This document shows positions 27,811 through 31,029 of a stretch of 64,000 nt of DNA, in pieces (the first letter of the stretch is position 1; the number at the start of each line of letters is the position of its first letter). The position numbers and the translations under genes were made by a program. This stretch comes from Orbicella franksi (Eukaryota): assembly GCA_964199315.1 (NCBI GenBank), contig OZ116707.1, positions 5,022,001-5,086,000 of the forward strand, written 5' to 3'. A model generated the notes under the pieces. That model saw only the letters and a program-made list of their open reading frames with translations, was not told the DNA's origin and searched no databases.

Positions 27811-28615
27811 AATCTTAAGATGTGTAGGGTACTTGAATTATGTTTAAATTACATTTGGACGTTTTTGTGACTGTTACGATATATTCCACACGATTTAAGC
27901 TTGTTTGTGACGATTTTTTAACGATTTATCACGGTTTCAGGCTAATTTAGATAAAATATGAATGAATGTTTGTTATTTATTTTTTTAAAGTCGAAATTGT
28001 TGAAAATTGTTTAAAATCACTGTTAATTGTTTGGAAATCGTGTCAATGCACAAATTTGTAAACAAAACTTGTTTTCAATTTTCAAACACAAAAATATCTT
28101 TAGAACAGAAATAAAATATTAACAAACAAACATCGCCAATGAAACATTTGTTTTCCTTAAAATAGCGCAGTTCACTGTGCCTCTGCATTGCTGGCGCTTG
28201 AGCGTAGCGCGCAAAACCTATGACAGGTGAAATGCCACGAGCAACAAGAGTTCATCTATCACACTCGTCTAGTTCCTTTGGTTTTTTTTCTTTTTTTTTT
28301 CTGTTCATTTTATCTTATTTAGGGAAATTTGTTCTCTTAAACAGTTTGCTCAAGCCAAATTTATTTTTTATTGTTCCTTTTCTCTTTTATTATTGCGACT
28401 TTTCGTAAAGAAGTGGTGTAAGGTAGTTTACCTTTGACTTGACAACTTAACAATTACTTTATTTCATTCAATATTCTATTCTATATGAATGTCTTACAAT
28501 TCAATAGTAAAATTGCTTTTCTACTGATAACTTACATTGTGAAATTGACCAATGAATACACAAATGGCAAGCAATTACTTTCTGACTAGTTCATCGAAAA
28601 AACTGATTGATTCAT

Positions 28616-29224
28616 TTATCGCCGTAGAATGAATTCAGCAAAACATCTAGCACATGGTTGAATGGACAATTGTTCGTTCTGCGGAATCCGCCTCTGAAAC
28701 TGAAAAGCCTTCCATTGTACTGCCATCATTTCTGTCTCCATCTGGTGGATGACCCCTCCCTTGACGTATACAAAATCATACTTTGTGGTGCAAAAAACTG
28801 GGGTGTCATTGTGAAATTCCAGATCTTTAGAAAAGTGTGATTTTGGAGCCGGGAGATGCACTGGCTGGCCCTTAAGCATCAATAGTAAATCGTCCCACTG
28901 CATAATCTGTGTATTCCCTCTGAAGTCATTTAAGAAAATGACCTCTGACTTTTCTGCCCCTACCCAGGCGAATGTGGATGTGGCAGGATTAGTGAAAGAC
29001 TTGTAAACAATGTTTAACAGATTAAGTAAAAATGTCTTGCCTGAATTGGCAGGGCCCTTGATTAAAATGCTGCAAAATTTTCCAGTCCCCTGTTCCAGGA
29101 GATTTTTCACAGCTTCTGTAAAAACTTCAATTGGCATGTGGTTCCAAATAAGTAGCTGTTGAGCGCATTCCGCCCACCGGCCGTAACACTCAGTCGTGCA
29201 AGGGTCTTGCAGACATTTTTCCAA
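28616..29224 (-). pseudogene. Superfamily 3 (AAA+) helicase of an HUH-Rep element
   Basis: Walker A GPANSGKT (29033-29056), Walker B IFLNDF, motif B' LLLMLKG..LPAPK, motif C PVFCTT. Confidence 0.85.
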
Positions 29225-29239
29225 GATCTGAAGTCTTGT

Positions 29240-30234
29240 TAGCTTACTTCTTTGTAGCAGGCATATAAAGGGGAGGGGGTGGGGGAGGAGGAAGAGAATT
29301 TGGGGAAGGGAACGCCTGCTACAAAAGCCACTTCTTTTGCATCTCCGCCTACTGTTTTACGGTAATCAGATTAACAGAGCTGTCAGTTCAATGACCAATC
29401 AGAATAAGGCGAGCGCCTTTCTGCATGAATGACTTTACATGGGAAGGTGTGAAAAAGTATTCATAGCAGCGAGCATTGTGAGAAAATCTTCAGGCCGTGT
29501 AATGTCATAAACTCCCACAAAGGTTTGTAAAAGAGAAAGAAAACCAAAGATAGACATTCAAAAAAACAGCAGCTGCAGATTTTGTGAAGTAACCTTTACT
29601 TCTGGAGGAGGATGAGCTTCATTTGAAAATCTGTTTTTGCCAGTGGGCAGAGAAGAAAGTGTCAGGTTGATTTTAGCCGAGTGTTGCGGCTCGATTGGGT
29701 TTCCACTAACGAGAGACGAAAACTTTTCAGAGCAGGGCTGTAGATCTTGTGGTCGCAAAATAAGAAATGCAGCTGAACTGTAGTTTTAATGAGCAAGCTG
29801 TATGCAGCACAAGAGTTGATGAAGATTTAAATCACCAGAATCGTTGCTTTACCATTCAGTTCAGAGTCCTTGGCGCGAACAAACATTTGATGTATGAGGC
29901 TTTTGTCGTATCCTGTGGACAACCCCGCTAATACATCTTTTCCATCTAGAGGAGATTTTACTGCAACTTCTTGCTCTGGTTTTAACTTGAATTCACTACG
30001 AGCCACAACGTTCAAATCAGCCAAGGCTCTCACTAGCAAATCCACTTCGGCCACCATTTTGGTTGTTTTTGCATTACTTCACAAACCCATCCTATTGTCC
30101 AATTAACCAATCAAAATGTTGTGGCTGCCGACGACCGCAGGAATGAACCAATAGGGATCTTTATAGCAGGCCTTCCTTTTCCCCTCCCCCCTCCCACTCC
30201 TCCATTTTTTTTCCCAAATTCTCTTCCTCCTCCC
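29240..30234. mobile_element. Non-autonomous Academ-like (AcademH-derived) element carrying a RecQ helicase fragment; right end truncated
   Basis: Exact 22-bp inverted pair gggaggaggaagagaatttggg (29283-29304) / 30213-30234; internal hairpin tttgtagcaggc..gcctgctacaaa; ORF 29827..30057 LKPEQEVAV..GKDVLAGLSTGYDKSLIHQ resembles RecQ motif I. Confidence 0.6.
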
Positions 30235-30239
30235 TGCAC

Positions 30240-30680
30240 TTGACTTGCGGCCATAGTTCTAGGTGGACCTGAGTTGCCTAAATCTGGATGGCCAGCAGAC
30301 TGGATGAAATCTTCATCTTCTTTGGTGGTGTACAATCATGCCAAATAGTAGTTGGTGGGCCGGTTAGAAAAGTGAACATAAACATTCCACTCGTTCTTTA
30401 AATATTGCCATACTGACAGCAACCTCTTGATCTTGTTTAGTTTAATGACCATGTGATAATACTTCCCTTGCGTTTTATGGTTTTCCTGGCTACAAGTCCA
30501 TTGAATTACTTTTGATTTTGTTCCCTCGCAATTCAAAACCGCCTCACAAATGCCATCTGCGAACGACTGTCTGTCCGGGAAAATGCTGAGATCAGCTTGG
30601 CTGTAGGTTATTAAGTACACGCTTCTCACTTTGGCTGGTTGCAGTTCATTATCGGAACTTTTGGACTGTGAACTACTACA
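30240..30680 (-). pseudogene. HUH (rolling-circle) Rep endonuclease domain
   Basis: Motif I YLITYSQ (30597-30617); motif II YYHM, a decayed HxH (30450-30461); motif III NYYLA*LYTTKED with a stop at 30336. Confidence 0.75.
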
Positions 30681-31029
30681 TACATACTTCTTTGACAAGT
30701 AGAAGCAGAAATATAGAACCATTATGCTACTTTTAATTTCCCATGCAATAATTCCAAAAGCATTCTTCAAACAGAACAGAAAGCCGACTAAGTTAAGGTA
30801 TGAACTTGACAATTTCACTCTGAATATCGCACGCATTTATGCATCTTTTGTTTTAAGTATGTAAAACGCTTAAAATAGCACTTGACTGTCATAGAAATCA
30901 CTTTTTTCAATCTCTACTGGGTATGCCTTCATCGTAAGGTTTGCATTCTGATATAAGTGTGCAACTGCTACAATAGTCCCTCCATTACCATAAATAACAC
31001 ACCTAGTCACACCAGCATGAATCTCGGAG

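Follow-up and report, generated by a model that had tools for sequence, protein, structure and literature searches.

The 64,000-nucleotide stretch of the Orbicella franksi genome analysed here (contig OZ116707.1, positions 5,022,001 to 5,086,000, referred to below as the window; ~39% G+C) contains what is probably a dead copy of a Tc1/mariner-type transposon that carried its own Rep-dependent origin of replication. In intact relatives of this element, which span about 3.7-3.8 kb between their tips, a TA dinucleotide is followed by a terminal palindromic module, a gene for a replication initiator (Rep) in which an HUH nuclease precedes a superfamily 3 (SF3) helicase, an intergenic region with short repeated sites (iterons), a convergent gene for a Tc1-like DDE transposase, a second module in direct orientation and again a TA. 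The copy in the window is dead, with both genes broken and both terminal modules damaged. An initial annotation of the window had recognised the Rep, and had overlooked both the decayed transposase beside it and the real termini of the element.

The initial claim that an HUH nuclease and an SF3 helicase lie here on the same strand, nuclease first, is borne out by homology, by invariant motifs and by predicted folds. With full-length relatives as tblastn queries, Rep homology in the window is bounded at 28625-30698 and occurs in a single copy. What is left of the gene falls into two minus-strand open reading frames (ORFs), one of 166 amino acids (aa), in which Rep motifs are confined to the last ~105 residues and which matches 25 proteins (best E=1.4e-63), and one of 202 aa, which holds the Walker A, Walker B and motif C region and matches 127 proteins (best E=4.5e-91). 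Set against P0235, the nearest full-length relative, these pieces cover 372 of 490 residues at 80-84% identity. Pfam returned subthreshold SF3 matches alone for the window ORFs (PPV_E1_C, RNA_helicase), and searches of PDB sequences with the same ORFs gave nothing meaningful. The gene had been described as split only by a later miniature inverted-repeat transposable element (MITE), and this description does not hold: besides one in-frame stop there is one large replacement, in which ~114 codons present in every full-length relative have given way to ~1 kb of unrelated DNA. The foreign DNA has inverted, G-rich arms of 25 nt that are 96% complementary, no second copy of it turned up in the window or among the 91 loci retrieved, and its being a MITE is unproven. 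It also encodes an ORF of 76 aa with a weak DEAD/RecQ-like match (E=0.065). The insertion in the transposase gene (see below) likewise proved to be without further copies, and when both pieces of DNA were compared with the terminal modules, nothing beyond chance-level matches of 9-14 nt was seen.

A search seeded by a natural relative of 351 aa returned 865 proteins, most of them 440-500 aa long, with nuclease and helicase in one ORF. It had been considered at the outset that the two parts might never occur together elsewhere; in hundreds of relatives they form a single uninterrupted ORF, 450-500 aa long. Among 32 full-length relatives (P0235 numbering), residues Y30, L31, T33, Y34 and S35 of motif I, H82, and Y125 and K128 of the YxxK motif are invariant, as are G345, K351 and T352 of Walker A and D388 of Walker B, and H84 is present in at least 90% of them. 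The AlphaFold2 model of P0235 (490 aa; mean predicted local distance difference test score, pLDDT, 81.7) begins at its N-terminus with an alpha/beta domain, which is followed by a disordered basic linker, then by a helical domain and finally by an ATPase domain. When this model was compared with the PDB using Foldseek, Rep68 of adeno-associated virus 2 (AAV2) came out on top, aligned over the whole length, with further matches to papillomavirus E1, AAV Rep40, the large T antigen of simian virus 40 (SV40), parvovirus B19 NS1 and a redondovirus Rep; the helicase fold is the part matched by the helicases of E1, AAV Rep40/68 and B19 NS1. Predicted viral structures gave E1, many parvovirus NS1 proteins, U94 of human herpesvirus 6 (HHV-6) and Reps of uncultured viruses and of CRESS-DNA viruses (those with circular, single-stranded DNA that encodes a Rep) as top matches. 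The N-terminal domain, modelled separately from another relative (P0122; pLDDT 84.4), is best matched by the Rep nuclease domains of tomato yellow leaf curl virus (TYLCV), Vientovirus, wheat dwarf virus, porcine circovirus 2 (PCV2), a smacovirus and a nanovirus, with target-normalised template modelling (TM) scores of 0.62-0.72. As modelled, the protein is a CRESS-type HUH nuclease joined to an oligomerisation domain and an SF3 helicase. By sequence, the family profile found no chain in the PDB and no curated family exceeded its threshold for Rep; weak Pfam matches among the 32 members are to REP_ORF2-G2P (24 of 32), Parvo_NS1 (14 of 32, best E=1.9e-6; 17.0 bits for P0235 against a cut-off of 20) and PPV_E1_C (14 of 32). 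The ratio of nonsynonymous to synonymous substitutions (dN/dS) between Rep copies is 0.13-0.16 in three independent pairs, and this, together with the invariant nuclease and ATPase residues, suggests that the enzymatic activity of Rep has been kept.

The protein family extends far beyond this window. Of 1.84 billion cluster representatives (clustered at 50% identity), 851 matched the family profile at E<=1e-30, and the number rises to 4778 at E<=1e-3. The members with a taxon name are from Asterias rubens, Montipora foliosa, Paramuricea clavata, Actinostola and Polarella glacialis (there fused to a SAM domain), and the remaining relatives are mostly from coral metagenomes and ENA assemblies. 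The cluster P0448 (P. glacialis CAE8640467.1 and nine others) consists of proteins of 850-1867 aa that are annotated as SAM domain-containing and are matched by the Rep profile over nearly its whole length. Because of these dinoflagellate matches the family reaches beyond animals, and some of the coral-metagenome matches could be symbiont-derived. The family is widespread and marine, and apparently undescribed. A cluster size of 386 for the nearest relative was considered as a sign of high copy number and rejected, since it stems from one locus resequenced across many Tara samples.

The second gene of the element became apparent from the genomic context of close relatives, where an opposite-strand transposase with the Pfam domains DDE_3 and HTH_Tnp_Tc3_2 stands beside Rep at every locus looked up. 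DDE_3 scores 45.6 bits against a cut-off of 28.6, and HTH_Tnp_Tc3_2, a paired-like helix-turn-helix (HTH), scores 42.1 bits against 31.5 on the copy at locus L002. A profile of the transposase matches the catalytic domain of Sleeping Beauty SB100X (E=1.1e-15) and the DNA-binding domain of Tc3 (E=1.4e-6), and residues D158, D257 and E292 are invariant in nine copies, their spacing of 35 corresponding to a DD35E triad. When the intact transposase of L003 was used as a tblastn query, all of its 359 residues were found in the window at 79-84% identity, in a gene that has acquired four in-frame stops, a frameshift and an insertion of ~0.9 kb.

Rep and transposase go together far outside the closest relatives. 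We considered 30 distinct loci with at least 1.5 kb of sequence after the Rep stop, taken from 80 metagenome loci and exact look-ups; an antisense transposase lies no more than 1.7 kb from Rep in 27 of them. Both ORFs are intact at 14 loci. The pairing is kept in the distant element L090 (Rep 29% and transposase 43% identical), and two distant elements have transposases that share 51% identity, a divergence about equal to that of their Reps. Across nine elements with both ORFs intact, pairwise identities of Rep and of transposase correlate with r=0.87, a value reached in 1 of 5000 Mantel permutations. The dN/dS of the transposase is 0.20. To judge from these ratios, both genes are under purifying selection, and the parallel divergence of their sequences marks them as a co-evolving, long co-inherited pair. 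The statement in the initial annotation that no capsid gene is visible can be extended considerably: none was found in or beside ~90 loci, no capsid-like domain was detected by Pfam in ten large neighbouring ORFs of the window, and a scan of 2.9 million IMG/VR contigs found none that encodes a relative of Rep. The 3.7-kb unit has room for Rep and transposase alone, and no polymerase is present in the element.

The ends of the element are of the kind that such a transposase would use. In long contigs, homology between loci stops at a pair of direct repeats (Table 1), modules of ~150-265 bp each of which is an imperfect palindrome, 73-77% self-complementary. These terminal repeats fold as long hairpins (-39.1, -37.3 and -60.7 kcal/mol; z=-5.7, -6.4 and -9.7) and share a core pattern (a C-run, CAATG, a variable centre, CATTG and a G-run) that was detected in 38 of 92 sources, whereas all 20 shuffled sets lacked it, and that is common to elements whose Reps are only ~50% identical. 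The two tips of a module are inverted with respect to each other (in the subgroup of the window the start is CAATCTTGG and the end CCAAGATTG; the inverted copies measure 10-11 nt in this subgroup and 27 nt in L021), so that the element as a whole has a terminal inverted repeat at its outermost tips. A TA abuts the outer tips at seven of eight left ends and four of six right ends, in differing flanking contexts, mostly of the form C-TA-G, and no TA stands at the inner borders of the modules. TA-flanked tips are the pattern expected of Tc1-type insertion, and the flanks suggest that a TA may have been duplicated. The initial annotation had proposed that flanks be aligned in the expectation of defined termini and no target-site duplication; the termini are indeed defined, but TA stands at most outer tips. 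All 11 modules compared have a fixed orientation relative to Rep, left and right copies being direct (89-100% identity in direct alignment versus 67-70% when reverse-complemented), and no parvovirus-like flip/flop was seen among them.

In the window, the module upstream of Rep has kept its core hairpin (~31061-31141) and folds with -24.3 kcal/mol (z=-3.4), its outer arm not being alignable to relatives. The high-coordinate end of this copy is degenerate, and its last ~35 nt were placed from module length. A 27-nt direct repeat (31153-31179 and 31212-31238, 81% identical) overlaps this end and continues just past it, and may belong to whatever damaged it.

Table 1. Parts of the element in the window, and terminal direct repeats of the window copy and of four relatives (coordinates of relatives are those of their own loci).
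Feature	Coordinates	Strand	Basis or identity
Whole element remnant, ~5.5 kb including two later insertions	25635..31178	-	cross-locus homology ends here; direct repeat; compared with L073, L001, L021, L053
Terminal palindromic module upstream of Rep	31029..31178	-	core pattern match; aligned with other module and L073
Rep gene remnant (HUH nuclease, then SF3 helicase)	28616..30698	-	homology to relatives; halves in different frames
HUH (CRESS-type) nuclease domain of Rep remnant	30300..30630	-	homology to P0235 residues ~26-135
SF3 helicase domain of Rep remnant (Walker A, Walker B, motif C region)	28625..29191	-	homology and subthreshold Pfam
3' intergenic region between convergent Rep and transposase	27809..28615	.	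77% mean identity to four relatives
Candidate origin	27830..28085	.	inverted 7-nt iteron arrays, ~10-11 bp spacing, flanking ~50 bp A/T-rich spacer
Tc1-like DDE transposase gene remnant, antisense to Rep, just downstream	25863..27808	+	tblastn with L003 transposase; blastn to L003
Second terminal module remnant (outer arm and part of core, inner arm missing)	25635..25712	-	direct repeat; TA at 25633-25634
Direct terminal repeats, window	left 31030-31104 / right 25636-25710		95% identity over surviving parts
Direct terminal repeats, L001	9498-9676 / 13139-13324		95% identity
Direct terminal repeats, L021	1033-1297 / 4732-4996		100% identity
Direct terminal repeats, L053	3389-3535 / 6839-6986		89% identity
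Direct terminal repeats, L073	1816-1966 / 5473-5624		93% identity

Between the two convergent genes lies the candidate origin. The same layout of iterons, with different iteron sequences, recurs in L013, L053, L001, L021, L023, L057 and L090: the intergenic region of L013 has six tandem 10-mers facing three inverted 10-mers, those of L001, L021, L023 and L057 have palindromic arms, and that of L090 (3434-3854) is made of three tandem units of ~165 bp, each of them a palindrome (~90 nt) whose centre is A/T-rich. When the inverted repeat was rated by a simple score, 10 of 28 intergenic regions gave values above those of every shuffle. On the ground that the iterons are unlike the module tips, we take them as putative sites of Rep rather than of the transposase. 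The initial annotation had pointed instead to a GC-rich hairpin at 28191-28210. This hairpin is present, but with a stem of 5 bp and a loop of 7 nt it is at chance level, as good as thirteen hairpins in the window, and it is not conserved, being kept in two of three close relatives that retain the region and deleted in two others.

Several copies depart from the canonical unit. L003-L006 (Tara coral metagenomes; for example L003, 5935-9952) have both ORFs intact and lie beside an APG12 gene; they are one locus seen in several samples, with identities of 98.5-99.8%. They are a circular permutation of the canonical unit, running from transposase through one module to Rep, and their ends flank the intergenic palindrome exactly, the palindrome itself being missing there; a search for inverted repeats at both ends of this copy in L003 revealed none. 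L044 (1-4826) is a tandem of two copies, 86% identical, that share one module and are followed by an inverted Rep fragment, and genomic tandems of the element therefore exist. The contigs L013, L024 and L027, whose ends overlap, were considered as circles, and this was rejected because direct repeats create cycles in assembly graphs.

Some further loci deserve mention beside these. In L042 and L043, which seem to be one locus in two samples, an internal deletion joins part of Rep almost directly to the ~30 first codons of the transposase and a terminal module, and this is likely a non-autonomous copy. The contig L087/L088 (ENA ERZ23497068 scaffold_422, 1-7688) reads the same on both strands (a perfect palindrome, at 100% identity), and on it two distant Reps of 676 aa, with 29% identity to P0235, stand head to head and a DDE transposase is missing; the assembly may have folded back on itself here, or the contig may represent a replicative form, hairpin-ended or dimeric, of a different element that has Rep only. 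At L091 (Asterias rubens LR699098.1), the gene LOC117292827 (8001-8666), annotated as 'uncharacterized protein, partial', is the helicase half of Rep only; a hairpin of the module core type lies 1.2 kb downstream (9857-9943) and a transposase is absent within 8 kb. This is a fragment of the element annotated as a host gene.

The architecture described above is what the loci display, and from it we infer how the element may work. The DDE transposase would cut at the outer tips of both modules and insert the unit at a TA, as Tc1/mariner transposases do. Rep would bind the intergenic iterons and replicate the element in an extrachromosomal state, as circles or concatemers, so that the two proteins together might turn a cut-and-paste element into a self-amplifying one. 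Units that run from module to module would be the product of the transposase, and the rarer palindrome-to-palindrome unit of L003-L006 could have arisen by breakage, or by Rep cleavage, at the origin. We go one step further with more hesitation, and propose tentatively, with our doubt slightly exceeding our belief, that this is an undescribed class of eukaryotic transposon-episome hybrids, in which the transposase integrates the element and Rep replicates its excised form from an internal iteron origin, and that the family so built is both old and widespread in cnidarians, echinoderms and dinoflagellates.

A number of observations weigh against a transposon that replicates from an origin of its own. 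In 18 of 28 loci the simple score rates the iteron palindrome as weak, and the spacer between the iterons carries the poly(A) signals of both convergent genes, which account for part of its conservation. The pairing of Rep with the iterons, and of the transposase with the tips, is presumed, and Rep may have its role in transposition, or elsewhere, and not in replication. The core of the modules could be conserved as a bidirectional promoter. The presumed TA duplication is read from the flanks alone, and one element, L001, has TG instead of TA at both sides. Extrachromosomal forms were not seen, the contigs with k-mer overlaps at their ends (L013, L024 and L027) being possibly assembly cycles. 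Finally, the two modules of one element are no more alike than the modules of sibling copies, so that nothing shows their regeneration at each cycle. Regeneration in the manner of long terminal repeats (LTRs) had been considered and is not supported by this comparison.

Part of this evidence would fit a plain Tc1/mariner element in which Rep is a long-standing passenger. In such a case the transposase alone would move the element, and Rep would aid excision or integration, have a regulatory role, or interfere with related viruses. The ends and TA flanks are of Tc1 type, no episomal form was seen, and module identities show no regeneration through a replicative intermediate, all of which speak for this possibility. 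On the other hand, the invariant nuclease and ATPase residues and the low dN/dS of Rep speak for an enzymatic activity that has been kept. Moreover, subgroup-specific iterons arranged around an A/T-rich spacer, away from the tips, resemble the origin of an SF3-type initiator, and the permuted copy ends precisely at the iteron palindrome. We consider a passenger Rep unlikely.

Less plausible still, and in our view rather improbable, is that Rep itself is the transposase, acting by peel-and-paste in the manner of Helitrons or IS91, with the DDE gene secondary. This comes close to the capsid-less rolling-circle transposon family that the initial annotation had suggested, of which the multi-copy, capsid-less and mobile nature has been confirmed. 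The HUH and tyrosine residues are conserved, the direct terminal repeats could be sites of initiation and termination, and one unit-length copy spans palindrome to palindrome. However, the element is not a Rep-only one: a DDE transposase is present in 27 of the 30 loci, with an invariant triad and under purifying selection, and TA-flanked inverted outer tips in many contexts are the signature of a Tc1-type DDE enzyme and not of an HUH one.

The other possibility raised at the outset, an endogenised single-stranded DNA virus, would make the window copy an endogenous viral element of the ordinary kind, left as a fossil by a CRESS-DNA virus or parvovirus relative that by chance inserted next to a mariner. 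The Rep fold is of the single-stranded DNA virus initiator type and the copy is decayed, as such a fossil would be. We nevertheless regard this as very improbable, since the same two-gene, module-bounded unit recurs at many insertion sites in different hosts, its Rep and transposase co-diverge and selection acts between copies, and neither a capsid gene in or next to the ~90 loci nor a relative in IMG/VR was found. That two unrelated elements came to lie side by side by chance, or through a nested insertion specific to one lineage, can be regarded as effectively refuted, for although Tc1/mariner elements are abundant in these genomes, arrangement and orientation are alike in 27 of 30 loci, down to the identities seen in L090, and the identity matrices of Rep and transposase correlate.

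The surroundings of the element in the window are probably occupied by other mobile elements. Among the ten large neighbouring ORFs, Pfam found a Mutator-like (weak), a SAP and a chromo domain, in one ORF each, and four ORFs of 500-665 aa in the window are without any Pfam match. Long ORFs are located at 39422-40366, 43719-44804 and 50155-51129, and also at 12507-14504, 23013-24665, 35562-37184 and 45938-47449.

Compared with known systems, the element is closest in its integration part to Tc1/mariner transposons (the Tc1 family, with Sleeping Beauty and Tc3), with which it shares a paired-like HTH joined to a DDE domain (DD35E here), inverted tips, TA flanks and a size of a few kb. It differs from them in that the transposase is not the sole gene, a co-evolving HUH-SF3 Rep being added, in that its ends are palindromic modules of 150-265 bp in direct repeat, and in having an origin-like iteron palindrome between the genes. 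The Rep has the same domain order as its counterparts in CRESS-DNA viruses and plasmids (Cressdnaviricota, such as geminivirus, circovirus and redondovirus; pCRESS), namely an HUH domain with a single YxxK tyrosine, an oligomerisation domain and an SF3 helicase, and its nuclease fold is closest to theirs. Sequence similarity to them is, however, below every curated threshold, and the element is chromosomal, transposon-ended, linked to a DDE gene and without capsid, nor has it a recognisable stem-loop with a conserved loop motif. The best whole-length structural matches are to NS1 of Parvoviridae and Rep68 of AAV, whose genomes also resemble the element in their size of ~4 kb, in hairpin-forming palindromic terminal repeats of ~150 nt and, by analogy, in an initiator that binds repeated short sites (putative ones here); unlike theirs, the modules of the element are direct, in one orientation and without flip/flop, there is no VP gene, and P0235 stays below the Parvo_NS1 cut-off.

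The assertion that the element is neither a Helitron nor a Replitron proved correct. It shares with both a eukaryotic host, a Rep-class HUH endonuclease and the lack of a capsid. Helitrons, however, have a two-tyrosine Rep fused to an SF1B (Pif1-like) helicase, where the present Rep has an SF3 one, and they possess neither inverted tips nor target-site duplications. The Rep transposase of Replitrons has no helicase domain (PMC10288648), whereas a helicase is fused to the nuclease in all full-length relatives studied here, and neither of the two groups carries a DDE transposase. In logic, the element is similar to Polintons/Mavericks, casposons and Teratorn, which combine a recombinase with replication machinery of their own in one unit bounded by terminal repeats; those units join RVE, Cas1 or piggyBac to a protein-primed polymerase B (PolB) or to an entire herpesvirus genome, are 5-50 times larger and in many cases contain capsid genes. 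Teratorn, a piggyBac element joined to a herpesvirus, is a precedent for transposon-virus fusion (PMC10175614). The passages searched in a 2023 review on such fusions name Teratorn and bidnaviruses, and nothing like a Rep combined with Tc1/mariner. In full-text literature we found no description of such an element, and an earlier one is possible, as subscription journals and Repbase Reports are poorly covered there.

As far as is known, eukaryotic DNA transposons either move by DDE-type cut-and-paste or copy themselves by means of RepHel (Helitrons), Rep (Replitrons) or PolB (Polintons). If our reading is true, a Tc1-type transposase stably joined to an initiator of the single-stranded DNA virus type would be a new solution for DNA transposons, and the element would be a living link that connects DDE transposons with single-stranded DNA viruses or plasmids and, among transposons that replicate themselves, the first to be based on an HUH-SF3 initiator. 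The exchange of replication and integration modules among viruses, plasmids and transposons would then become directly testable. It would also explain many 'uncharacterised' Rep-like genes annotated in corals, sea stars and dinoflagellates, genes that might otherwise pass for viral fossils, and in genome annotation such Rep matches should be masked as transposon genes rather than recorded as endogenous viral elements or host genes.

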